48,149 bases of DNA from Macrostomum lignano (Eukaryota): assembly GCA_002269645.1 (NCBI GenBank), contig NIVC01001904.1:1-48149 (forward strand), written 5' to 3'. The notes below the pieces were generated by a model. That model was not told the DNA's origin, ran no database searches, and saw nothing but the letters and a program-made list of their open reading frames with translations. Shown piece after piece: positions 9,118 through 46,275 of this stretch (positions are counted from its first letter, which is position 1; each line of letters opens with the position of its first letter). The position numbers and the translations under genes are program-made.

Positions 9118-18994
<9,877 letters not shown>

Positions 18995-19689
18995 GTTTCT
19001 GTTAGCAGCTGACTATGAAATGCAAATCATGGGCCAAAAATGCCACAGCAGATTAGAGATGTTCTTGAATTGTTCTTAAAATCTGTAAGGCCAGCATAAA
19101 TACAAAAATCGAATTTAATTATTGCCAACTGATGTTTCTAGATATTGCCTAGATAAATAAAATGGTAAATTGAGTATAAGAAGCGTATTTTTACCAAGCC
19201 ATATTATTAATATTAACATCCAAGCAAAGACTAATTAAAATAGCCAAGTATATTCGGGCTTCTTGAACTTTAGGTAGATAAAATAGTTGCAGTTTTGATC
19301 GGATCATAATTTTGTCTCTATAGTGGTTCTTGATGGTGCTGATTTCAAATTTGAGCTTCATTTTTTGTAGCATAATGCCAACTACTGGGGCATGGGGAAT
19401 GGGGGGTTTTAGAGTAGGGAGAATCTTTATGGGGAATGATTTTATGTCCCTAAACTTCAATAGAGGCGTCATACATGCGCAACAGTCGGCCGAGTCGGCC
19501 GATCCGGCCGACCGATTTGGCGGCCAACCAAGTAAGTCGCAAAATTGATTAACCGCCAAAAAAAAACGAAAAAACAAAAGACGAAAAAGGGGAAAGGAAA
19601 AGGAAAAAATGAGAAAAAGGGAGCAAAGAGAAAGAGAAAAACACAAAAAGAGTTGTAAGTGCTGTAAGTTGCAGCACTGAAGACAAGGT

Positions 19690-21780
19690 AAGTCGCACCG
19701 AGGGCAAGCTAAGTCGCACGAGGGCAAGCTAAGTCGCAGCAGGACCGAGCTAAGTCGCATCGAGGGCGAACTAAGTCGCACCGAGCGAGAGCTAAGTCGC
19801 ACCGAGGGCGAGCTAAGTCGCACGGAGGGCAAAATAAGTCGCACCGAGCGAGAGCTAAGTCGCACTAAGTCGCAGCAGGACCGAGCTAAGTCGCACCGAG
19901 GGCGAGCTAAGTCGCAGCAGGACCGAGCTAAGTCGCACCGAGGGCGAACTAAGTCGCACCGAGCGAGAGCTAAGTCGCACTAAGTCGCAGCAGGACCAAG
20001 CTAAGTCGCACCGAGGGCGAGCTAAGTTGCAGCAGGACCGAGCTAAGTCGCACCGAGGGCGAACTAAGTCGCACCGAGCGAGAGCTAAGTCGCACTGAGG
20101 GCGAGCTAAGTCGCAGCAGGACCGAGCTAAGTCGCACCGAGGGCGAACTAAGTCGCACCGAGCGAGAGCTAAGTCGCACTAAGTCGCAGCAGGACCAAGC
20201 TAAGTCGCACCGAGGGCGAGCTAAGTTGCAGCAGGACCGAGCTAAGTTGCACCGAGGGCGAACTAAGTCGCACCGAGCGAGAGCTAAGTCGCACTGAGGG
20301 CGAGCTATGTCGCAGCAGGACCGAGCTAAGTCGCACTAAGGGCGAGCTAAGTCGCACCGAGGGCAAAATAAGTCGCACCGAGCGAGAGCTAAGTCGCACT
20401 AAGTCGCAGCAGGACCGAGCTAAGTCGCACCGAGGGCGAGCTAAGTTGCAGCAGGACCGAGCTAAGTCGCACCGAGGGCGAACTAAGTCGCACCGAGCGA
20501 GAGCTAAGTCGCACTGAGGGCGAGCTAAGTCGCAGCAGGACCGAGCTAAGTCGCACTAAGGGCGAGCTAAGTCGCACCGAGGGCAAAATAAGTCGCACCG
20601 AGCGAGAGCTAAGTCGCACTAAGTCGCAGCAGGACCGAGCTAAGTCGCACCGAGGGCGAGCTAAGTCGCAGCAGGACCGAGCTAAGTCGCACCGAGGGCG
20701 AACTAAGTCGCACCGAGCGAGAGCTAAGTCGCACTAAGTCGCAGCAGGACCGAGCTAAGTCGCACTAAGTCGCAGCAGGACCGAGCTAAGTCGCACCGAG
20801 GGCGAGCTAAGTCGCACCGAGCGAGAGCTAAGTCGCACCGAGGGCGAGCTAAGTCGCAGCAGGACCGAGCTAAGTCGCATCGAGGGCGAACTAAGTCGCA
20901 CCGAGCGAGAGCTAAGTCGCACTGAGGGCGAGCTATGTCGCAGCAGGACCGAGCTAAGTCGCACTAAGGGCGAGCTAAGTCGCACCGAGGGCAAAATAAG
21001 TCGCACCGAGCGAGAGCTAAGTCGCACTAAGTCGCAGCAGGACCGAGCTAAGTCGCACTAAGGGCGAGCTAAGTCGCACCGAGGGCGAGCTAAGTCGCAC
21101 CGAGCGAGAGCTAAGTCGCACTAAGTCGCAGCAGGACCGAGCTAAGTCGCACCGAGGGCGAGCTAAGTTGCAGCAGGACCGAGCTAAGTCGCACCGAGGG
21201 CGAACTAAGTCGCACCGAGCGAGAGCTAAGTCGCACTGAGGGCGAGCTAAGTCGCAGCAGGACCGAGCTAAGTCGCACTAAGGGCGAGCTAAGTCGCACC
21301 GAGGGCAAAATAAGTCGCACCGAGCGAGAGCTAAGTCGCACTAAGTCGCAGCAGGACCGAGCTAAGTCGCACCGAGGGCGAGCTAAGTCGCACCGAGCGA
21401 GAGCTAAGTCGCACCGAGGGCGAGCTAAGTCGCAGCAGGACCGAGCTAAGTCGCATCGAGGGCGAACTAAGTCGCACCGAGCGAGAGCTAAGTCGCACTG
21501 AGGGCGAGCTATGTCGCAGCAGGACCGAGCTAAGTCGCACTAAGGGCGAGCTAAGTCGCACCGAGGGCAAAATAAGTCGCACCGAGCGAGAGCTAAGTCG
21601 CACTAAGTCGCAGCAGGACCGAGCTAAGTCGCACCGAGGGCGAGCTAAGTCGCACCGAGGGCGAGCTAAGTCGCACCGAGCGAGAGCTAAGTCGCACTGA
21701 GGGCGAGCTAAGTCGCAGCAGGACCGAGTAAGTCGCAGCAGGGCCGAGGTAAGTCGCAGCAGGACTGAGTTAAGTCGCAG
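19690..21780. repeat. About 21-bp satellite (CTAAGTCGCACCGAGGGCGAG and variants, about 100 units) with 220-bp and 576-bp higher-order periods, inside the hAT element
   Basis: Invariant core TAAGTCGCA; near-identical minus-strand ORFs recur at 20179/20399/20619, and identical ones at 21027/21603. Confidence 0.95.
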
Positions 21781-21983: not shown

Positions 21984-24900
21984 TTAATAATATTTAATTA
22001 GCAAATTAAAACTGCAAGATTCTAACGGTCTTATATATGAACTTAGAAGAACTGTAGTCTGACCAGAGATTGTCCTTTCTGTAGCGCGTTCTGAAGCATC
22101 TGCATCTCTAGAGTCTGAATCAGAAAGATGGTCCTCTGTTTCAGATTCAGAGCTGTCATCTTCCATTCCAAACCGTCTAGCAAGAGGTATGATTCTCGAA
22201 CTGTATGTAAAGACAGTATGTAATGTTTCAGCATTAGGCAATAACACTGGGTTGAGCACATTAAATATTGAGTAGTCATCCTCAGGAAAATAATTACGCA
22301 GCTGATCAATTATGCTATCAATGATTCGACTGCGAATCTCATCCAGTGCTGGATAAGCTCCCATGTCAACAACACTGCCACGTCCACTAGCATCAAATAA
22401 TCTATTTCTTAGAGATCTGTCTGCAGCAGAACCTGGTTGCTTCAACTCAAACCTCTCTGTTGGATCGCTGCTTCCAGGGCCGGAAGGACAAGCAAAGTTA
22501 GAATAAGATAGGTCTCTTGTGTGACATCCTGAATGGTATTCCAGCTGCGGATATCCATCTGCAGTTCCCAAAACTCGACGACACTTGCAGGAAGCCAAAA
22601 AGTCCACAATGCGAGGACCATTGTTCGTTTTTAAGGTTTCTAGTGAATGGATAAGGTTAGTGTGGCGTTCTTGCAAGCCAATAAATGTACCCTTGGCTCT
22701 TTGAAACTGCAAGGACTCAAATTCCAGTAATTTTAGAATGTCCATGAGAAATAGATGTAATGAATAATACCGGACATTTTGCAATGTTTTCAATAATCCA
22801 GAGGCAGTTGCTTTACTTTCGTCATCAAAGCCTGAGGAAGGTGATTTGATATTTTCTAAATTTGTCAGAAGCAAGTAGTACGACTTTCGAATCACATCAA
22901 GAGCAGACACTTCCGATGCAACCCACCTGATGCGATATATTCTTTTTAATTCATAGAAAACCAAGTTGAGTGCTTCCGAAGTTTGTGCCAAAGATGCCTT
23001 ACGTTTAACAGCGTGGCTCATATAAAATTTGTGTAGAGAATTTATATTCTTATCGAGATGTTGCATAAATGGGAAGATTTCAAAGGCATGATAGATTGAA
23101 AGTTCTAACTTATGCGCTGCACAATGGTGCTGAAAAAATTGTTTGCTAGCCCAAGGCCTCAGTTGACTTATTAATCCCACTCGACTTCCTGTCATTACGG
23201 ATGCACCATCAGTTGTCACCCCCAATAGCCTTCGTTTGATTTCATCTTCTAGCTTGTCATCCGAAAATAAACGGATGAGAAGTTCATAAATGCTTCGTCC
23301 AGTCTCTACTTCAGTCAGACGTTTAAACCGATAAAAAACATCAAATGTTGGCTGTTTTCAAGAACTCTGAAGTATATCATGACGTAGCTGTTTGAATGAA
23401 TATCAGACGTTGTATCTAGTACAATAGAAATCGGAAGATTGTCAGCACTTTTAATGTAATTCACAAATGTCCGATGCATTGTATTACTGATTGATTCCAC
23501 CATTGCTGCGGCACTTTTGCGATGCTTATGATGGCTCCCCATATCCAACCCATTTTTTACTTGTAAATCAATCATATTTGGATGAGCACTGAATGGAATA
23601 TTAGATTTGACTTCGGCATAAACTGTTGTCAAAACTCGGGCTGTTATTTCATCTCGTTTAGTTTTAGCTAGTCTAGCGGCCTCATTCATCTGTTTGAGTT
23701 GCTTTGCAAGAACTGAAGTATGTTTTTCCTTCATCCACTTTATGGCGTCACTGAAGTGTATTTGATGAATGTTCCTGTAGTTTTCTTCGTACGTTATCTT
23801 TTGCATGACCTTTGGGAATGTAGCCTTGTTCTGTTGCAAAAGTTAACTTACGTTGGCTCTCTAGATTTGTCTCCTTTTTCTTATGTGCATTCAAAAATTT
23901 TCTGCAGATCCGACATTGTATTCCAGATCTTGATAGATCTTCGGTGTTTTGAACATATTGAAACCATGTCTTCATTTCTTGTGACACAAATTTTCTTAAA
24001 ATTGATCTGCAATGGTCAAATTAGAGAATATTTTGGGATTTGGACTATTTGTGAGTATCTAAAAGCAATATGCTAATAAGTGCAATACACAATACACTAT
24101 ACATTAATTTACAGTTCGTCAGTTTCCATTTACTTACTGTGACTGGTGCATCTCCAAAGAATGTAACCACTCCTCTCGAAAACCAGATGTATCCTCTCAG
24201 TCCTTTTTAGGGAAAACTTCAATATTTTCGCCCATCATAGAGGAAGACGAGGGCTTTGATGCTGAAGTGGCTAGACATGCGTCTGCAGATGTGCTTATGC
24301 ATGGTATTTTTTTTTGCGATGGCCCTGCTTCTGCAGTATTTACTTGTACTATTTCAACATCACCTGAACCCCTTGAGTCGCTCGAATCTAAATCAACAAT
24401 AGGACTTTGGCAAAGTGATCGTTTCGTTGATTGTCTTTGAATATTTACTTGCCTAATAATTTCCACTTGTAGTTTGCTTGTTTGCTGGTCATTCTCCAAC
24501 AACTCTCTTCTTTCCTGTACATTTGCAGCAGAGCAAAAATTAGAAGTTTCTGCAGCAGCAGTTTGAACAGCATGATCTCGATTAGCTGCTATTTGCTCTG
24601 AAAATTCATAGGACCTGGCCAATTCACTACGGTGTGAGCTTTCAGAACATGGAGCTGGAGCAGGAGCTAGTCGCATTTCGATTCTTTCTGTTGCTGATGA
24701 AGCAGATGCTAATGCTGAGTCTGCCAATGTACCTGCTTCTCTTGAAGGTGTATTTATGATGGCTTTAATATTGTCCTCTAAAATCCAATGAGCACCTGAG
24801 CAGTCATTTTCTCTACCTGGAGTCAACTGTCCAAGTTTCCACCTTGTAAAAAGCAAAGGCTTTCGTAACTCACTGCTGGATTCAGGGCACCGGTTTATTG

Positions 24901-25765
24901 AATAGTCCTCATGACCAAGTTCATCCCATTCTCTTGCTGGCTTTAAGATGTAGTTGGGCTTGTCTCTTAGCCTACGATAAATGGACTAAAAAAATGTGCA
25001 CCTGTTATTTTGTGTACTTCGTGCATAGATGATCATGTCATGCACATTGTTCCTAATAATTTCAGCTAATGAGTTATCAATGATAATTTTATCTTCATAA
25101 ACAGGTCTTCTTTGTGTTGCATGCATTTTAGCTAGTCGCAGTTTTCCAATGCTACTGGCAGTTGTGGAACTTGAACTGTCCGATTCTGATCTAGAAAAGT
25201 CTCGTTGATACAAGAGAATAATGGCCATAGCACTTTTACCATTCCCATTCTTTAATGCATTTGGTTCTGTTGGAATTGTCTTACTAGCAGACTTGAAAAA
25301 ATCAATGATGGATGACTGCGATGATCCACTAGGAGCGGAACTTGGCAGCCCATGTCTAGTTTTTCCCTGATACCCAATAGATGTATCGGTAAAAAACATA
25401 TCTGCTGCTTCCTGCTTCTCTTTTGATGCAATAACAAAGAAACTGCTGTCCGTTTTGAAGCCCGAGGACCGATAGAAGTCAGCAGAAAATGAAACCACAG
25501 GTCGTCTAAAATCGCCGCTATATTCTTGAACTCCAATCAGAAGAAAATCACGGAGTCTCACTGGCACTGATCCTAATAGCATTGCAGTTGTGGAACAAAC
25601 TTTCTTCAGCTCAATGAACTCTGAAAATTCTTGAGATCCAATATTAGGCTCATCAGTATTTAACTCATTTATAACAATTGAGCACTCACTCTCAGCTAGA
25701 ATACCATTGATAGCTAGGATGCCACTTAGAATCAGTAGGCAAAGACAACTAAGGCTGTACATCAT
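21984..25765 (-). pseudogene. Signal peptide + lamin-tail-like domain + linker + ZNF862/KIAA1586-like hAT transposase, about 1215 codons, interrupted by 2 in-frame stops and 2 frameshifts
   Basis: ORFs 24986-25846 and 24197-24856 are in the same frame with open sequence between them. After TGA 24197 the frame continues to a GTAAGT donor (24137), which is phase-2 compatible with the TTGCAG acceptor (24007) entering the CRIC-containing transposase frame. Frameshifts near 23760 and 23345. Confidence 0.75.
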
Positions 25766-28077
25766 TCTGTGAAAGATTAAGTCGAGTATATGATTTTGGT
25801 GATAAAATAAAATTGATTTATGAGTATTACTATATAAATAAAACATTTAAAAGCCCTTACCTTTACCAATTCATGTACAGAAAGTAAGTGTAAATACAAC
25901 CAATTGCCTTGGTAGTTTAGTTATATGCTCGTATCAGATGCAGGCAGACAGCATAGGCTGCCAAGGTGCTATAAGTTAAGGTTAACTTTCACTATTTGGC
26001 TTTACAGACTGCTTTTATCGCTGCATGCATTGACTTAGCCTTAGCTTGTGCCATCATACTCATACAGCTATATATACATATGTATCTCTGCCACTCCCCA
26101 CTTTTGCAACCTTACACTGTACAATCATGCCTAAAACACTCCGTGTCAAGTGTACTGTTCTAGTGCCACATGGGGTACAAATACGATTAGGAATGACAAG
26201 AGTCAAAACCATACATGCACAATAGTTGGCCGATATGGACGACTGATTTGGCGGCCAACCAAGGTAAGTTGCAAAAATGCCCACCCAAATAAATACCAAA
26301 GTAGTATTAAGTAGCTGACGAAGCATTTTGCCTTAATAAAGACAGTTATAGTTACTCCTGCCGTTTACCCAAAGTTGCGTTAATTTTGCTTTTAGGTTTT
26401 TTTCATGTAAGTCGCATTTTTGGCCGAAAACTACGTCGCATTTTTGTTAAAACTAAGTCGCACGGCCGACCAAATTTTGGAGGTTGCGCATGTATGAGAG
26501 GCGTGGAGGTCTATTTAGGATTAGGTAGATAAATTCGGAGGCTGAAGGAAGGGGGCAAGTTTTGGGTGGAACGGGGGGGCAAGGGGGGGCTAACAACCAC
26601 TAACAACAGGGTATGGGAATTGGGGGTTTTAGGATAGGGAGAATCTTCATAAGGATAGATTTTATATACCTAAACTTCAATAGAGGCATGGGGTCTATTG
26701 AAGATTAGGTAGATAAATTTGGAGACTGAGGGGGTCTAGAGGGGAATTTTAATGAAGCCTAAATAAAAAATTCAGCATGTTATCATATACTTTCATGGAG
26801 AAAAATTATAATCCTATCAAACTAATTGATATCAGCAGCTGTAGTTACCTTCAGAATAGAGAAGACAACATAGATTAGTAGAAATGAGTATAGATAAACA
26901 AGTAAAGAATGTATGGGCATGGCTAGTCACAACCATGACAGAACGAAAGCAAATCAAAAGTGGGAAGTGAGGGGTAGTGGCAAACTGTGGGTCAGCATTT
27001 TATAAAAACACTAATCATACTGTTTTATGAGACAGCCCCTCTCATTCACTGCATCACATTTAGCCATAGATAGCCCATGATTACGAAAAAATCGATAAAC
27101 TCGTAAAAGTTTTCTGTTGACATTTTTGAGGTTCTGTAAGTCTATGACTGACCTTTCTCTACTTAATCGTCCATATCTCTTAAAGCACAGATTCAAATCT
27201 CTTGCAATTGGTGTCATTTTAAAGAAGAGACATGCCGCTTTCAAATGACACCAAGCACATGCAAGTGTGACTGTCCATATGTCCACACCAAGCAAAAGTA
27301 ACACTACTTTCTGGATGCCCCTTGTATATTTCCAAATAAAATTATTTTCATTAAAATATAAAGAACTATCATTAATAATTAAAAATTCTTAATTATGAAT
27401 TAGCTTTTACAATAGAGTACTGCAGCTTAGTAATATTAGTAACTTAATTAATATATTGACTATAAACAATTGATATCTTCATTATTCAAGCATATATATA
27501 TAAGCAATCAGCAATAAAAAAATTAAATGTATTGAAAAACAGTGTTTAACTTATCTTTATATTTATTTTGGCTGAAACTCTTACATTATAAATCAAATAA
27601 GAAGCTCAAGACAGGAAAAACTCATAATTTAAATTTTATTGCATATAAAATGAATTTTTTATATTTCATAAATTGGTTGAGATAGCCTGGTCGACACTGT
27701 ATTCTGATCTAAGAGAGAAAAGCATTCTGATTTAAAAATGCTTCTGCTGGAAGCTACAGTAATAATTCCTTAATGATCAGCATTAAGGAAGAATTAGAAG
27801 AATTGAATCTTAGAGTTTCCTATAAATTTCTATTAATAAAGGTCTTAAGGTAAAAAGAATTATATTTATAGATGTATTTTAGTTATTAACTTTTTTATGT
27901 AGTTGTTTTGAATTAGATATTTTAGATAGTTAAGTTTTACAATAATTTTGAAGCTTTTTTGTTTTACTTTTTTACTCTCTAATCTTGAAAATTTTTGTCC
28001 CGGGCCTCGCGGGGCCCACAACTTTGGGTCGATCAAATGTAAAAACAGTCTAGATTTTATTCTAATAAATAATTTAC

Positions 28078-28823: not shown

Positions 28824-28858
<35 letters not shown>

Positions 28859-28859
28859 T

Positions 28860-28898
<39 letters not shown>

Positions 28899-28899
28899 T

Positions 28900-28930
<31 letters not shown>

Positions 28931-29049
28931 CTAAGACAGACAGACACTAAGACAGACACTAAGACAGACAGACACTAAGATAGACACTAAGACAGACAGA
29001 CACTAAGACAGACACTAAGACAGACAGACAGACAGACAGACAGACACTA

Positions 29050-29090
<41 letters not shown>

Positions 29091-29121
29091 CTAGGACGGA
29101 CAGACACTAAGACAGACAGTC

Positions 29122-29162
<41 letters not shown>

Positions 29163-29680
29163 GGCAGGCAGAATGTACTCCCTTAAGAAATCATCTACCA
29201 AGCGATGCGCCAACCACGTGCCACCGCTGCAGCGTGGAGGTGAACATGCTGTTTCAGACGCAGACCGACAAGATTGAGGTTTTCACATTCGTGAAGCGCC
29301 TGTTCCAGGAGCACAACGCTCTGATTAGGGGCAGCAGGAGTCGGGCTCTGTTCATTGAGACAGCCTACCTGTTCTGCATGGATGTGAGTGCCTCATAGTT
29401 GGCTATGCTTAAAAATATCCTTGCTTCCTTGTAAAACAGCCTTGCGATTAAATTTCACCCAGGTAGCCGAGAGCGCCATCTCGTCGAACTTCTTCATGTA
29501 CATACCGAAGTCGCACTACAGGCGCTATTTGGAAGATGTGCCAATTTTGATGAAAGCAAAAGTCTGCATCATCATCGACTATCACAGGAGCCTGGCTTAT
29601 CGATTTGGTAATTTTTTATCGAGATTGTTGATTTTAACTAAGTGTAAAATGACAAAACAAATGACACCAACATCACCAGG
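28617..29680 (+). pseudogene. Truncated duplicate (exons 28617-28787, about 29164/29172-29383, 29463-29607) of the unidentified gene at 37205-38965
   Basis: 29172-29680 matches 37540-38048 with only 5 substitutions in 509 nt. Exon 1 carries indels relative to the other copy. Homology stops one base after the exon-4 acceptor. Confidence 0.7.
28824..29170. repeat. (CAGA)n microsatellite with CACTAA interruptions
   Basis: Visible; fills intron 1 of the duplicate gene. Confidence 0.95.
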
Positions 29681-31858: not shown

Positions 31859-33268
31859 TCATGCTGTAAATTGGATCAGCGGTGTTTCTTCGTTAATCTC
31901 CCGATCCCATTGCTCCTCGTCGATGCATTCTTCCTGGTCAGAGATGTCGCCTGACAGGAACAGCATTACAGCCATTGGATAAGCCACGAATCGATAGTAC
32001 GCCGAGCCAACGATTAGGAATGCAACAATAATCAAATGGTAGACATAGAACAGGGGCGCCCGGCCCTGCGCCGGTTGCAGAACCGGGTTGTCCGCCGGCA
32101 CGGCGCTAAGAACTGCTACTAGAGACTGACCGGCCAGAGTAGCGAGGCCCCATACGGTGAAGCCGATCCCCATCACGAACAGCTTGCAGTGGTTTGGCGC
32201 AACGCCGTTCAGTATCTCCAAGGCGGCGATCACGGTCAGCAACTCGGCCGCACCGTCCACTGCGGAGGCGGCCCAGAACACGGCCTGCACAGACAGGGCA
32301 CGCTGAGGTGGGGACCGCGAAACTAATATTAAGACGATTTCCACCAGGGCTTTGACAATGATTCCTCCCTGAAGCCGGAGCTCAATTGATATATGCTTGG
32401 ACGAGCGGTAGGCAACCAGCATTAGCAGCAGACTCCACACGATCTGACAACTGACTTTCATTAACTCAGGTGAAACTAAACACTCGTTAGATTGGCCATT
32501 ACTGGTGTTAGTCGAATCAATTGATTCGATGTAGTGACGCATCTCAATAGTGTACACCAAACTTTGACTTCCAGCAACCGAAATTACAAACGGAATCATT
32601 GGAGAAAATATCTTGAAGTATCGAATCAAACGACCTGTCGTTGGAAATGTAAAACGGGCGCGCCGAGCCAGGTCGTCAGTATTGATGTAGCCCGACATAG
32701 CCATGAACGCTATGCTGGCTACAATGCCAACCAGGGTGTAATAGTTCCCGACTAGCTCCTCAGACATCGGCAGCACAATGCCGATGAACTGGCCAAGCTT
32801 CACGGACAAAAAGTAGGCACCGCTGAGTATTGTCCAAATCCTGGGCTGAGGGTACCAGCGGTAGATGCAGTACACAATGCATGGCTGCATCAGGCCGTAC
32901 AGAAGTGGAATAGGCGACCAGGCTGCCGTAACTAAAGCGCTTGAACTGCAGATGAAATTCAAAAAGATTGCAGCCACAAGAAGGATAGAGGACACAAGCA
33001 TCAGGTGACCGCAGATGTGAATTACAACCAAGTATCCCATGCAGGCATTAGCTAGCAGCCCGCCAAGCACTGGAAGAAGATACCTGGTGGAATAAATCCA
33101 AAAGATTGCTGTGCCTCGGGAGTCAAAGCACTGATCGCTCAGCCGGCACGTACCGTTTACAGACAAAAAATTCTCTGGGGACAGTATGCCAAGCTGATTG
33201 TCCACGACCTTGCTGCACATCTTCATAAACAGCACCACCAGAATGTCGACTGTGCTTTCGCGAAGCAT
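31859..33268 (-). CDS. Divergent POT/PTR2 (SLC15-like) MFS transporter, about 469 aa, uninterrupted CDS
   Basis: Multi-TM hydrophobic ORF. YLLPVLGGLLANACMGYLVVIHICG resembles the POT Y..PLLGG.LAD..LG.Y..I motif. AELLTVIAALEILNGVAPNHCKLFVMG resembles GE....TGLEF.YS.AP.SM.S..MG. A GTAAGC donor near 33965 suggests a 5'UTR exon. Confidence 0.7.
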   Translation of the reverse strand: MLRESTVDILVVLFMKMCSKVVDNQLGILSPENFLSVNGTCRLSDQCFDSRGTAIFWIYSTRYLLPVLGGLLANACMGYLVVIHICGHLMLVSSILLVAAIFLNFICSSSALVTAAWSPIPLLYGLMQPCIVYCIYRWYPQPRIWTILSGAYFLSVKLGQFIGIVLPMSEELVGNYYTLVGIVASIAFMAMSGYINTDDLARRARFTFPTTGRLIRYFKIFSPMIPFVISVAGSQSLVYTIEMRHYIESIDSTNTSNGQSNECLVSPELMKVSCQIVWSLLLMLVAYRSSKHISIELRLQGGIIVKALVEIVLILVSRSPPQRALSVQAVFWAASAVDGAAELLTVIAALEILNGVAPNHCKLFVMGIGFTVWGLATLAGQSLVAVLSAVPADNPVLQPAQGRAPLFYVYHLIIVAFLIVGSAYYRFVAYPMAVMLFLSGDISDQEECIDEEQWDREINEETPLIQFTA

Positions 33269-34392
33269 CGCAAATAAAAAATCAAACTGTAAAGACTTCA
33301 ATTTAGATTGTAGAACGATATACGCTTGATACCAGGCAAGCGACTGAGATTTATATTTTAAACATTGACCACGATACATTGGGTGGATGAGGCTTTAGGG
33401 TGGAGAGCAAGAGCGGCCAGAATGCAGAGCGTACATGAGTAAGAATGTACAGTGAAATATTGTAGAAAGGCGCACGCAACGAAACAGGTAACGAGTAAAA
33501 CACCACTCCAAAATTCTGAATAAAAACAAGCTAACAAAAGTAACAAAAATTTGCCCAGCCAAGTCACCACACAAACGATACAGCTTTGTGTTCGAGCAGG
33601 CGTTTTAAAGCAGGCAAATTTAGGTTAACTATGCAAGGCAGCAAATATATGGACGTTAAAGACGGCATCTCTTTTTTGAAAGCAAAATTAGCATCCGAAA
33701 TGCTATCAAGCAGACAATTGGTTTACAGAACAAATAGCTTGTGCAGAAGCTCACGATGCCGTATTGTCCTTCACGCAAGACTCAGTCTAGCAATAGCCTA
33801 CCAGTACAGCTCATTGTCTAAAAAAGTGTAGAAATGTACAAATCTGCTCTAGCTATACTAGATTAGATAGATTACTCGGAGAATCTAGAGTAGATTCCTA
33901 TGTCCCGCTAAGGTGCCTAATACAAAGGCAGACCCAAAGAACTAGCAGATTCGAAGGCTTACCAGCCGCGATTTTTGGTAGTTCGAACCCCAAACGGCGC
34001 CGACACGGGGCAGCGGAATTCTTCCCGTATTTGTATTTCTTCTGGTATTTCGTTTTACACACGCTACTCAGCGGCAGGGGCGCGCAATTCAATGGGCACA
34101 CTACGCTACAGTACAACAAGTCACCGGAGAGCCACGAGCACGACGAGAATAGGGGTCTCACGGGGTCTGAATAAATAGACAGCAAACTGGGGTCGAGGGC
34201 ACAGAATATACACAGAAATTCAAGCATTTTTGTTTAAAAAATCGGTGCAAGAATTGAAATCACACCAGCCTACTCTTGTTGTGAAGCTTTGATAAGTAGG
34301 GCTTGAGTTTTTGCCATAGACTATTCTAAGAGCGAATTTTATTCTTTGCTTTCAAATGAAAATTAAGTTCAGTCTGAGCTTTTCTGCGCAGC

Positions 34393-40883: not shown

Positions 40884-43800
40884 TTACCTAGCAGAAACAG
40901 GGCTATTGCTGCTGAAGTCTGCGCAAGCCCCTAAATAAGGCCTTGCTTGAAAGTGATCCTGGACCTGGAGACTTTCCGGTGTAAGATAAGCCGACAGATC
41001 GCCTACTGATAGCCTAAAATTAAAAAAGTAATGTGCTTTGCTTACCTTTGCTAATAAACAAATTAAGATTTCATGCATGTGATACAGGATTCTGTCATAC
41101 CTGCTACCGGTATTGGGTCCTAGGCCTCGCTCAGCTCTCAGACGCTCTCCGAGTTCCCGAATTTCCCTGTCGTGCGAGAGCAGCATGAAGTCTAGCGCGC
41201 AATCTCCATTGTGGTTAGCGAGCGTCGGAGAGGCTTCCTTGTCCAACAGAGCCTGGACGCACTGAACTGACCGCTGCTGCACAGCAAGCATCAGTGGTGT
41301 CACTCCATCTTTATTCTTTGCGTCGACTGTAGCTCCTTCTGTCAGCAAAGCCTCAACTTCAATCTGATTAGATTTGTAAGCAGCCCAGTGAAGAGCAGTG
41401 CTCTGAGTCTCATTCTGATGGCTTGCATTTACATGGCAGTTTTCCAGTAAAAACTTGGCTGCCTCCGTGTTGCCGTGAAGCACAGCCAGCATGAGGGGTG
41501 TGTCGCCGTGCGCGTCAATGGAATCGAAAAATTCTTCATTGGACGAGTGCTGCTTTAAATAGAAAAGAATCTCCTTGTTGCCTCCAATGGCAGCTAAGTG
41601 GGCGGCGTTTCTTCGCAACAAATTTCGATCGTTAAGACTACAACCAAGCTTTCCGTGCAACACCTCCAGTAGCCGGGTCCTTCCCAGAACAATGGATTGT
41701 AGGAGGGGCGTGTCTCCATTCACATCCGGTTCTTTCGCCCGGACTCCGGGGTCACTAATCAAGTGCAGCAGAATCTGCTCGTGACCAGCTGCAACAGCTT
41801 CGTGCACGAGCGTATAGCCGCGCTTTGTTTTCACCCCGAGACTGCAGCCGATTTTCTCGAGCTTCCGAAAAATGTGATAATTGCCTACTCTGACGGCAAG
41901 CGTTAGTGCAGTTTCTCCGTTCTGATTTGCTTCATTTAGGAGCCTTTTATTCTCTTCTGTGCTCTGATTGTCCCGGATCAGCATCAGTGAAGCAAATATT
42001 GACTGCCACTGGCTATCACAGCATCACGAATTTGCCCTGACTGTTTCTTACAAACTCGCGTCGCTGAAGACTCCTGAGCGCTGCTGCCTGACCAGTAGAC
42101 GCCAAATGGCAAAATAAGGACTCGCAGACGCTGTCACTGTGATTTCTCAGGTGCATCGTCACGGCGAACCGGCTGTTTCCTGAGCGAGCCGCCAATTCCA
42201 GCATTGAGCGGCCATCTCTAACCGCAAGTTGTGGGTTCCAGCCCTTTTCAACCAGCAGCTGGTACATCTCTTCGTTGCCTATTCGCGCGGCTAGGTGCAA
42301 GGCGGTTTCTTCATAACAATTTTTGGCATCCTTTAAAAAGTCGAATTCAGACAAAAGCCACCGTAGGGTGCTCAGTTTGGATTCAGAAACCGCCACGTGA
42401 AGCAAGGTGTTTTTGTTATTGTTCACGTCGTTCTTTGATTCCGGGTGCTTCCGCAAAATCTCGCGGGCCAAATCAATTTGGCCAAATCGAATAGCGGTCA
42501 GCAAGGGCGTGTACCCCTTAGCATCTTTGACTGTAACGCTTGCACCTCTGCTGAGCAGTTCATTAATAAGACTACTGCGACAAGTTTCTATTGCCAAGTG
42601 GAGTAAATTCCACTGACTTTCGCGCCTGTCTACTGGTACACCCAAATCGAGCAACTCTGTTAAGTTCTTATTCTTTCGAGAGCGAATGTTAGTACGAAAG
42701 ACTTCGAAATTCGGAGACAATGTGTCGGCCGATAGACGAGCACCCGTTTGTAAGAGCAAATCGATGATACTCCGACTGCCCCGAAAGAATGCCTCCGCTA
42801 ATACAGAGACTCCATCCTTGCTGACCACATTCACGTCTGCACTTTTGGCTAATAAAAGTTGGCAAATTTCAAAGCCTTTTGAAGCCGATAAAGCGCCAAA
42901 TATCGGTGTCTTTCCATTTCCATCAATAGCATTCGGATCAGCTCCGTATTCGAGCAGCAACTCAACAATATCAAGCTTTAAATTGCGGCATGCGACATGG
43001 AGGGGCGTTTCAAAGTCGCCATTTCTGGCATGCAGAAGGGATTCATTCTTCTCAATTAGGCTTTTAGCAATCTTCTTTGAACCTCCTTTACAAGCAAAGT
43101 GAAGGAGAGTGTTCTTCAGTGAGTAGACTTTCACTGAGTCTTCGTCAGTAATTGGCCAGATTTTTGACAAAACATCTTCATCACCGCGCAGGCACGCAAT
43201 GGAGACAGCCGAATCACCATCATTGTTTGTGTGTCTTTTTTCCAAGCCAAAATCGATTAGTAGGCCAACTAATTCTGCACTGGCCTTTGCTGCTGCCAGT
43301 GTCAAGCACGAGTCACCTGACTTAGTTACCGTGTCGATAGGGAACTTCTTTTCGATTAAAACCTTCAGAATTTCGAGCTTGTTACACCTGCACGCCAGGT
43401 GAGCAGCACTGAGACCGTCTTCTGTTTCGGTGTCTTTGCTGCACCCGTTGGCGATTAATATCTGCACCATGCTATCGGCCGCAGCCTTGCCCACCTCTAT
43501 GGCAATCAAGAGAGGTGTCCAACCGTTTGACTTCCGATTGTTCACGTCGCATCCAGCGCTAATTAGATCAGACAGAAGCTCGCTATTCTGGCCAATGATT
43601 GCATACTCAAGCGCAGTCTTGCCGTAGTTATCTTTAGCTGTCACAAAGTTCAGGTCTGGTACCGTCGTTAAGAGAATTTTCACAGTTTCCCTTGACCCAG
43701 CCAGCGCCGCCAGCATCAGGCTCGTGATTCCTGCCGAGTCAATGCAGCAAATGGAGACGTTTTTCTCCACCAGCTTCTGTAGAACTTCAAGTCCACCTGC

Positions 43801-46275
43801 CTCGCAAGCAAAATGGATGGCTTGTCTGTTTTCTTTAGTGCAGGGTTCAAGCAGAACGTTTCTGGATAGCAGAAAGTCTACAATAGACGAGTCGTTATTG
43901 GAGCATGCTATCATAAGTGGCGTCTTGCCCGTTTTGTCTTCTTGGTCGAGGCAACAGTCCTTCCGTTCTAGCAGCTTCACCATGTCAAAGAATCTCATCT
44001 GCGTTGCCATGTGGACCGCATTTTCACCTTGATTGTTTCTCAAGTTAACATCGGCACCGTAGTCCGCGAGTTTCTTAACCACGTCTTCGTTGCCTTCTCT
44101 AACGGCTAGCAAGAACAGAGTGAGCCCGTATTTGTCTTTTGTATCGAAAACGCACTTTAAATTGTTAACAAGATAGACAATTGCTTCAGGATGCCCCTTC
44201 ATGGCAGCGAAATGCACAGCGGTTCTGCCGCACTCGTCTGTAGCGTTTTTATTGTCATTCTCTTCTGGCGAGTCTCGGTGGAGATACCGAATAACATCGA
44301 CTTGGTTTTTTGCTGCAACTTGCATTAGGATAGTCTTACCCTTTCTATTAATGTTCATTATAGGTTTTCCGCTTGCAGCAAAATGTGTCAGTAAGTCCAC
44401 CCTACCCATCTTGGCGGCCATGCTCAAAGCAGAATTTCCTTTGTTATTCTTAACAGTGGAACTACACCCGTACCCAATTAAAGCAATGACAATTTTTCGA
44501 GTCAGGGAGCCGTCCTCAGACTGCGCGGTGATTGCCTTCATGAGAGGGGTATTGCCCTTGTTGTCGGCAATGTCCATGGGGACTTTCTTCTCAATCAAAA
44601 GCTTGATCAGCGGCCAGTTAAGAGCAGAGGTAGCTTGAGAAGCTACTGTATTTCCCTTATTATCGATGACATTAATCTTGCAACCCTGATCTAACAGGAA
44701 TTTGACAGTCTCCAAAGCGTTGTCTTTTGAGCCTGCAGCTACCAATATTGCAGTCTTGCCTTCTGAGTTTGGTACATCGAAGTTTGCTTGATGACTTTTT
44801 AGCACATTCAGCACGCTCAACTGCCCATTGGCGGCAGCCAAAAGTGCCGGAGTATTTCCAGCTCTATCGATGCGATTTACGTCGCAGTTATTTTCGGCAA
44901 GATAGGCGACTGTCTCTGCGGTGCCGGCGTGACACGCTGCCATGACTGCAGTTCGACCGTCCTTCGCTCTCGGAATGTCCAGTGGCATACTAGCTTGATG
45001 AAGCTGCTTCAGCATTTGGACTCGGCTTAGTTCAGCTGCCAGTTGAATCAGATTTGACTGGGTTTCACATTCGAATTGGTCGGTAGATTTCATTGCGTCA
45101 AGCACGCAATCGAAGATCTCTTGATTTTCAGATTCGATGCAGTAGGCTAGGGGGCATTTCCCCATACCATCTTTCAGGTGCACGTTGGCACCAGCTCTAA
45201 GTAGCATCTTCACAAATTCTATATGGCTATTCATTACGGCTGAAAACAATGGTGTTCTACCCAGGTTGCAAACCCGATTTACGTTGCAGCCTTTGCTCAA
45301 TAGAAGCTCTGCAATCTCTTCGCTTCCTTGCTGAGCAGCGTAGAACAACGGGGAGCTGTTGGTATTGTCAATCTTGTCGAAGTTTCCATCTTGTTCTGCA
45401 ACTAGATGGAGAAACTCTGTGGAGCCAATTTGGGAGGCTACATGAGCGATTGTCTGCTCATCCTTGTACTGGAGATCGCACGGCTTTTCGGCGTCTCGTT
45501 TCGGATAATTTTCCAGCCAATAACGGACGCATTCGGTTGCATGGCTCCGTACCAGCTCCGGTATGGTCTCGTTGTGCACCGCCGCGTCAAACTGCAGAGC
45601 CAACTGCTTCTCTTCCAGAATAGCAAGACTCTGCAGGTCGTGAGCAGCAAAGGCCAAGTCAGCGGCTGTGAATCCCTGGCGATTTTTTACGACAAGATCT
45701 GCGCCACGGTCAGTTAGCAGCCGGAGCAGATGTGGTTGCTGATTAACGGTTGCCAGCATTAGAGGCGTGTTGCCGTCTTGGTCCTGAGCGTTGATACTGG
45801 CCCCTTCGGAGAGAAGCCTGCTGGCAATCTCACTTTGTCCGTTTCTAGCTGCGCAGTGAAGCGCAGTCAATCCGTAGGCGTCTTGACAGTCGACACTCGG
45901 AACTCTGCGCAGGGCCATCTGGCAGGACTCTAGGTCGCCAGATTCAGCTGCGCGATGTAGACTACGGGTTGCTCTTAGTAGGGCTTCATCAGGCTCACCG
46001 TCTTCTCTGCTGTCGGCGCGACTTGACAAAGAAGCCGAGTCGTCACGCCATTGCATGAAGCGCCTAATCTGGAGAGCGAGCTCCTCCAATTTAGCATACT
46101 CGAGCTGATCTAATCTTTGAGTGCTCAATTTGGATAGCAGTTCCTTAATACCTTGAGGAAGACGAGTGCCAGTTGATGGTTCATTTGACGAGTTTTTTAT
46201 TCCAAGCTGCAGAAGAAGTTCCTCGACTTCTCTCGCCTTCTTGCGTTTTTTGTTGTTGTCGCTGGGCTTCGGCAT
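40884..46275 (-). CDS. Very large ankyrin-repeat protein (about 45-48 repeats, about 1740 aa up to a splice donor at 41045), split by a frameshift near 42000
   Basis: The 1419-aa and 366-aa ORFs are both continuous G.TPLM.A / TALH.AA ankyrin arrays, separated by 31 nt in different frames. AAG|GTAAGC donor after ILICLLAK. Confidence 0.85.

Follow-up and report, generated by a model that had tools for sequence, protein, structure and literature searches.

A probable hAT transposon relic in Macrostomum lignano points to an apparently undescribed transposase lineage with a signal-peptide-like leader and a divergent lamin tail domain

Introduction

Among eukaryotic DNA transposons, hAT elements are some of the best studied, and the accessory parts at the N-terminus of their transposases are normally zinc fingers. 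Here we analyse a stretch of 48,149 nucleotides from Macrostomum lignano (assembly GCA_002269645.1, contig NIVC01001904.1, positions 1 to 48,149 of the forward strand; this whole stretch is called the window), in which four minus-strand open reading frames (ORFs) between positions 25765 and 21984 had initially been annotated as one gene fusing a signal peptide and a lamin tail domain (LTD) to a hAT transposase. We consider it highly probable that the locus is a dead, 3′-truncated copy of an autonomous hAT transposon of the Buster / FAM200-ZBED5 type, belonging to an apparently undescribed lineage with such a leader and LTD.

Buster-type hAT transposases, FAM200 and ZBED5 have the same RNase-H-like core (two Asp, CxxH and RW), insertion domain and upstream CCHH zinc finger as the gene in the window, and relatives of this gene also share with them a C-terminal dimerisation domain with its Glu and, on two contigs (L009 and L013), terminal inverted repeats (TIRs). 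In contrast to these systems, the family studied here adds a leader, an LTD and a long linker in front, and the TIRs seen in it, of 43 nt and at least 76 nt, are long against the 10-25 nt typical of hAT elements, while the copy in the window is disabled and has no dimerisation domain. ZNF862, to which the core had been likened, contains a hAT-derived core with the same general motifs, whereas the family assignment obtained here is to PF27073 (FAM200/ZBED5) only.

The LTD (PF00932) is found in the amphioxus protein LOC118427361 as a unit of ~180 amino acids (aa) that can be aligned whole with the transposon module, from the start [IV][IV]INE[LIV]N...E[FY]IEL through vDxvvY and SxxRC to the TPGxxNxC end. 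Both have the same invariant Cys pair and both start with a signal-peptide-like leader. However, the amphioxus LTD stands in an eight-repeat protein with a C-terminal membrane span, whereas the transposon has a single LTD, with two insertions, an extra near-invariant Cys and scores below the Pfam cut-off, that is fused to a transposase. Bacterial secreted LTD-nucleases of the ExeM / Xds / NucH kind combine a secretion signal, an LTD and a DNA-cleaving enzyme. This order of parts is alike by analogy only, the bacterial enzyme being a non-specific nuclease of another fold that meets extracellular DNA, whereas here we find a eukaryotic DDE transposase with a zinc finger and a patch resembling a nuclear localisation signal (NLS). 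Full-text literature searches returned no paper in which a hAT transposase is connected with either a lamin tail domain or a signal peptide, and the lineage is apparently undescribed in the literature searched and unnamed by the database sources.

Results and discussion

Four ORFs of one disrupted gene

The four minus-strand ORFs occupy 24986..25846 (Met start at 25765), 24197..24856, 23315..23839 and 21984..23225, as initially listed. Comparison with intact relatives (proteins are given P numbers, contigs L numbers) supports reading them as one disrupted gene, in the order signal-peptide-like leader, ~307-aa module, linker, phase-2 intron, CCHH zinc finger and hAT RNase-H-like core. Its parts are the following:

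25767..25860, minus strand: putative 94-nt intron of the 5′ untranslated region (5′ UTR); GTAAGG donor and CACAG acceptor read, ending 1 base before the ATG
25694..25765, minus strand: signal-peptide-like leader MMYSLSCLCLLILSGILAINGILA, 24 aa; Kyte-Doolittle 19-residue window score 2.39
24770..25690, minus strand: putative divergent LTD module of ~307 aa with an in-frame TAG inside; from hhalign, the AlphaFold model and the ratio of nonsynonymous to synonymous substitution rates (dN/dS)
24986..24988, minus strand: nonsense TAG in place of Glu (CTFF-E-SIY); Glu in P0001, P0002 and P0004
24200..24769, minus strand: low-complexity, helix-rich linker; basic patch SQKKIPC at 24319-24299
24197..24199, minus strand: nonsense TGA at the Trp codon of the conserved WEDTxxF motif; Trp kept in P0001, P0002 and P0004
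24007..24137, minus strand: 131-nt phase-2 intron; CA/GTAAGT...TTGCAG/ read directly
23741..24006, minus strand: start of exon 2 and CCHH (BED-like) zinc finger; CRIC at 23915-23904, H..H at ~23774-23741, frameshift 1 inside
22164..23740, minus strand: hAT RNase-H-like core and insertion domain; D, D, CxxH and RW motifs, tblastn to relatives
21984..22163, minus strand: unrelated acidic, Ser-rich tail and stop TAA (21986-21984), standing in place of the hAT C-terminal dimerisation domain

The first two ORFs are in one frame with only the TAG at 24988-24986 between them, and this frame continues to the TGA at 24199-24197 and the intron donor at 24137. All of the motifs initially quoted for the gene (MMYSL..., SIVINELNTD, EFIELK, NRC, TPGRENDC, CRIC, TTDGAS and HHCAAH) were found in the window. 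The splice signals of the two introns proposed at the same time are present as well. For the 131-nt intron, the GT..AG borders can be read, excision keeps the frame into ...MKTWFQYV...CRIC..., and position and phase recur in L006, L002 and L005; the ORFs of P0001 and P0002 both end at its donor, and L001, P0014 and L013 have a continuous ORF without it. For the 5′ UTR intron, the signals AAAG/GTAAGG (25860) and CACAG/ (25767) are kept in L002, and L001 has a similar acceptor immediately upstream of its ATG.

When the N-terminal 336 aa of the gene served as query, a protein search returned P0001, which is 95% identical to the window and has Glu at the TAG site and Trp at the TGA site. Further N-terminal relatives were P0002 (64%), P0003 and P0005 (59%) and P0004 (44%). 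On the nucleotide side, L006 has the parts in the order seen in the window, with the same intron position and phase. A chance pattern is excluded, because the search matched relatives with E values as low as 1e-211.

A stop and an intron separate the two halves of the gene in the window, as would be expected if a host leader-LTD gene and a separate, neighbouring hAT transposase gene had been wrongly joined through the stops. This explanation is hardly credible, since the ORFs of P0014, P0020, P0043 and L013 run continuously across both parts, the LTD of P0004 passes into the zinc finger without an intron, and P0001 has Trp at the position of the TGA. The single gene initially proposed is thus borne out by its intact relatives (P0001, P0014, P0020, P0043 and the L013 ORF).

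A dead and truncated copy

The lesions of the window copy go beyond the two stop codons. By comparison with L006, we placed a first frameshift (-2/+1) near 23755 and a second (-1, the loss of 1 nt in a T run) near 23334. Homology to the relatives ends at ARRFGM (22181-22164), and the window matches residues 11-1004 of the 1147 residues of P0014; the last ~140 aa of the full-length relatives had no match anywhere in the window, even at E<=10. The C-terminal hAT dimerisation domain (PF05699) with the catalytic Glu, present in the family, is accordingly absent from this copy. The two frameshifts and the missing ~140 aa were overlooked in the initial annotation, which did not recognise that this copy cannot encode a working enzyme. 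Because of two stops, two frameshifts and the loss of the catalytic Glu and dimerisation domain, we conclude from the sequence that the window copy is dead and 3′-truncated and encodes no functional protein. It has no function itself, and its value is that of a pointer to the family.

In exon 1, the window and L002 differ by a synonymous divergence (dS) of 0.105, with a dN/dS of 0.215 overall and 0.165 in the LTD module. These low ratios indicate purifying selection over most of the window-L002 divergence and therefore recent lesions in the window.

The TAG at 24988-24986 is a G to T change beside a run of six T. L006 (59% aa identity) has its own stop, a TAA, at the same Glu codon (L006 1106-1108), again by G to T after six T. 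A programmed stop was considered here but rejected, as Glu occupies the position in three other members and each of the two stops is a G to T change beside a T6 run. The coincidence suggests a homopolymer-adjacent mutation hot spot instead. A 2.1-kb minisatellite with a 21-bp unit (19689-21780) abuts the truncated 3′ end of the relic.

The transposase part

The initial assignment of the core to the hAT superfamily is supported by several lines of evidence. The window contains VLDTTSD (23422-23402), TTDGAS (23216-23199), the CxxH motif HHCAAHKLEL (23129-23100) and the RW motif IRWVAS (22931-22914), and the same D, D, CxxH and RW residues are invariant in an alignment of eight core proteins (A7). 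tblastn with P0014, P0019, P0020 and P0008 against the window core gave E values down to 1e-76. In three full-length relatives (P0014, P0020 and P0043), each a single ORF with the module at the N-terminus, Pfam Dimer_Tnp_hAT (PF05699) is found above the cut-off at the C-terminus, and four more relatives have sub-threshold matches to it. The precomputed matches to PF27073 (FAM200-ZBED5_RNase-like) include an unmarked one on the transposase ORF of L006, weak or faint ones on P0014, P0020, P0075 and P0141, and listed ones on P0156 and P0158-P0161. The zinc finger matches zf-BED weakly (E 0.063), and its H16 and H22 are invariant in A7. Collectively, these results support a hAT transposase; the Buster assignment, taken from the name of the Pfam family PF27073, is tentative.

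The N-terminal module as a divergent lamin tail domain

A search of the module profile matched P0121 at E 3e-10. This protein, Branchiostoma floridae LOC118427361 (XP_035693005.1), is named "LTD domain-containing protein" in UniRef, and it comprises a signal peptide, eight tandem repeats of ~180 aa (Pfam LTD E 7.5e-95) and a C-terminal membrane span. Aligned by hhalign with the eight repeats, the module scored 98.0% (E 1.8e-13) when represented by 5 sequences and 99.7% (E 9.8e-26) with 51 sequences, in the latter case over template positions 1-182 of 182. Relative to the amphioxus repeats, the transposon module has two insertions of ~40 and ~28 aa. Invariant residues of the module include Glu in both INE and EFIEL, Asp in HDM and Cys in NRC and NDC, and the NRC/NDC Cys pair (C268/C297) does not vary among the amphioxus repeats either. 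LTD is the only Pfam family weakly matched by more than one of the 51 modules. With only 5 aligned sequences, AlphaFold gave no usable model (pLDDT 42.8), whereas the AlphaFold2 model from the 51-sequence alignment reached pLDDT 84.5 and pTM 0.87 and is mostly beta. Alignment of the profile to bona fide LTD repeats thus supports the initial reading of the module as an LTD, of a divergent kind.

An old and widespread family of mobile elements

Searching 1.84 billion representative proteins with a profile built on the N-terminal module, we obtained 232 matches at E<=1e-3, 113 of them at E<=1e-10. Each of the 232 proteins stands for one 50%-identity cluster, and the sources of the family are Logan read-set assemblies, ENA and JGI metagenome assemblies and at least one NCBI genome. 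About 14 matches are 1,000-1,250 aa long, and several relatives are uninterrupted ORFs of 1,100-1,250 aa with leader, LTD and transposase. A metagenome scan with P0019 led to L013-L016, and the L013 ORF (1,157 aa) is 41% identical to P0014 from leader to C-terminus; the same scan with alignment A8 gave no match. Protein searches with the transposase query returned unnamed metagenome proteins only. Among 19 clusters of family members looked up, none had a descriptive name or accession; one was a "hypothetical protein" and one came from an NCBI genome assembly.

A tBLASTn-type search for intact copies and for LTD-hAT fusions elsewhere had initially been proposed, and such copies do occur (P0014, P0020, P0043 and L013). 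On this distribution, the leader-LTD-hAT fusion is to be regarded as old and widespread, not as a local accident. Of the two origins initially entertained, the capture of local cargo does not agree with this age and spread, while an undescribed hAT lineage with this module fits the data.

Stand-alone host proteins of 350-460 aa with a leader and an LTD were considered as a separate class and set aside, at least some being gene calls of exon 1 only (P0036 ends in WETT plus junk). P0033 begins with the final part of one LTD unit, after which comes a second, complete one; LTD modules of the transposon type therefore also exist in tandem.

Two relatives have recognisable ends. In the 4,625-nt contig L009, which encodes P0014, both ends coincide exactly with a 43-nt inverted repeat that has a single mismatch, and inverted repeats of at least 76 nt flank the ORF of L013. 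The leader and module lie inside both pairs. Because their ORFs sit between long TIRs, L009 and L013 are, judged by these ends, real and bounded transposable elements. For the window copy, we examined direct repeats (19388-19544 / 26224-26687) as element ends and rejected them, as they are direct and not collinear and look like an unrelated dispersed repeat. The segments at 19388-19544 and at 26224-26276 / 26609-26687 are 85-87% identical, lie on both sides of the relic and are probably unrelated to it.

The leader and the destination of the protein

The signal-peptide-like N-terminus initially described for the window gene turns out, by heuristics, to be a feature of the whole family. The LTD of the members is almost always directly preceded by a Met and a short hydrophobic stretch, and a hydrophobicity rule identifies a leader in 63 of the 97 Met-initiated members. 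Among 70 members with a classical leader directly before the LTD, the h-region measures 8-20 aa (median 12 aa, below 18 aa in 66/70), the presequence has a median of 25 aa, the net charge of the n-region is zero or above in 65/70, and a -3/-1 site of small residues is present in 69/70. The character of the leader is conserved across members and its sequence is not. Working signal peptides keep character rather than sequence, and this combination therefore argues against an inert relic.

Two other features of the protein point to the nucleus. In 9 of 15 relatives, K/R residues form a basic patch 20-45 aa ahead of the WEDT motif (SPKKKRVC in P0002, for instance); this patch is NLS-like in composition and, together with the zinc finger, follows the LTD. 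Helices are predicted in the linker of the P0001 model with low confidence. Beyond the leader, full-length members show no further strong hydrophobic segment, and the module has few N-glycosylation sequons and usually five Cys.

We hold it as a tentative possibility that the hydrophobic N-terminus is not a working secretion signal and is either an inert exon relic or a tether to the endoplasmic reticulum (ER) or the inner nuclear membrane, with the LTD acting as a nuclear accessory that binds chromatin or DNA. The enzyme needs nuclear DNA, the NLS-like patch and zinc finger come after the LTD, there is no second transmembrane segment able to keep the transposase out of the lumen, and the module has few sequons and an odd usual number of cysteines. 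However, the character of the leader has been held across lineages that are only ~25-30% identical, which indicates selection; an h-region below 18 aa in 66/70 members is short for a membrane anchor; and the Cys pair C268/C297 is common to the amphioxus LTD repeats, which are located between a signal peptide and a membrane span.

That the leader is instead a working signal peptide, so that this hAT lineage or its N-terminal LTD product would enter the ER or perinuclear lumen or be secreted, we regard as unlikely; to our knowledge, no such route is known for any DNA transposase. If true, a secretory route could limit the dose of transposase, give it access to the nucleus from the lumen or carry it from cell to cell. 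Either way, the family poses the question of an enzyme that acts on nuclear DNA and yet has a conserved leader of the ER-targeting type.

Mobile element or fixed gene

Several results weigh against reading the locus as a relic of a leader-LTD-hAT transposon. The signal peptide was judged by home-made heuristic rules. Pfam LTD (PF00932) matched neither the window ORFs nor P0001-P0004, even at E<=10, and among the 51 modules there were 7 weak matches to it, the best at E 0.005 and none above the cut-off; standard Pfam annotation misses the LTD in every member tested, which would explain why the leader-LTD-hAT architecture is unannotated. Foldseek of the module model against the PDB gave only weak immunoglobulin-like matches (E>=0.14) and no lamin tail, and was in this sense uninformative. 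For the transposase, a local Pfam scan of the window ORFs and the joined conceptual protein returned nothing of use, and PDB sequence searches with a single protein and with profiles A3 and A7 gave chance matches only; hAT membership consequently rests on the relatives and on the motifs. We found no TIRs or target-site duplications for the window copy or for six other contigs (L008, L010-L012, L017 and L018), and a scripted search detected no pair of TIR plus 8-bp target-site duplication in L008 or L009, the contigs of L009 and L013 ending at or inside the repeats so that any flanking duplications would lie beyond them. Finally, L002 and the window have ~300 nt of upstream non-coding sequence in common, so that L002 could represent the same locus from a different individual or species; such a case fits a fixed or domesticated copy no less than a mobile one.

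This last observation bears on the main alternative for this particular locus, in which the window lineage is a fixed, possibly domesticated hAT-derived gene of its host and the window holds a pseudogenised allele or orthologue instead of what remains of a recent insertion. The contigs L002-L004, obtained from three samples, share an identical intact exon-1 protein; their upstream non-coding sequence matches window positions 26209-25895 apart from indels, and they may represent this locus in other individuals or a sister species. The dN/dS of 0.215, the host-like introns and a 90% identity cluster of only 2 member sequences on 3 contigs agree with such a gene. However, the window copy has five independent disabling lesions, a second, diverged copy (L006) has decayed too, and the relatives in other hosts are TIR-bounded elements, which makes a fixed gene improbable. 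In comparison with the window, L002 has an upstream GC-rich insertion of ~640 nt (L002 428-1104), and its conserved intron contains a CACTCC-type microsatellite (L002 2960-3050).

A possible origin of the lineage

The transposase of the lineage comprises, in order, a leader resembling a cleavable signal peptide, one divergent LTD with two insertions, a linker of ~130-215 aa with an NLS-like patch, the CCHH zinc finger, the RNase-H-like DDE core and, last, the hAT dimerisation domain. Intact members presumably move by ordinary hAT cut-and-paste. We propose that a single, ancient capture from a host extracellular LTD-repeat gene, of the kind represented by amphioxus LOC118427361, supplied the leader and LTD, and that the captured block may have been the first coding part (signal and LTD) of that gene. 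The module would since have been kept by selection as an accessory, most likely one that binds DNA, chromatin, a membrane or a partner protein. P0121 of amphioxus is a candidate for the kind of host gene that supplied it. The family would in this case clearly exemplify the long-term retention of a captured host module by a mobile element, and it extends the known eukaryotic partners of the LTD.

Surroundings of the locus

No Rfam match was obtained in the window. A gene for a cytoplasmic tyrosine kinase lies on the minus strand at 9118-13471, with an SH2 exon at 13031-13471 (Pfam SH2, 5e-13), an N-lobe ORF at 11890-12786 that was read by eye and is interrupted by repeats, and the C-lobe at 9118-9501 (PK_Tyr_Ser-Thr, 4e-42); such a gene points to an animal or close relative as the host. 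On the same strand, two long ankyrin-repeat ORFs (1419 and 366 aa) at 40884-46275 apparently form one intron-poor gene, and a 506-aa ORF at 31859-33379, without a Pfam match, is by eye rich in hydrophobic stretches resembling membrane spans. A 133-aa minus-strand ORF at 17389-17790, also without a Pfam match, resembles the C-terminal end of a non-LTR retrotransposon reverse transcriptase. The window is unusually rich in minisatellites (17004-17351, 17953-18197, 28824-29172 and many others), several of which lie in introns of host genes.

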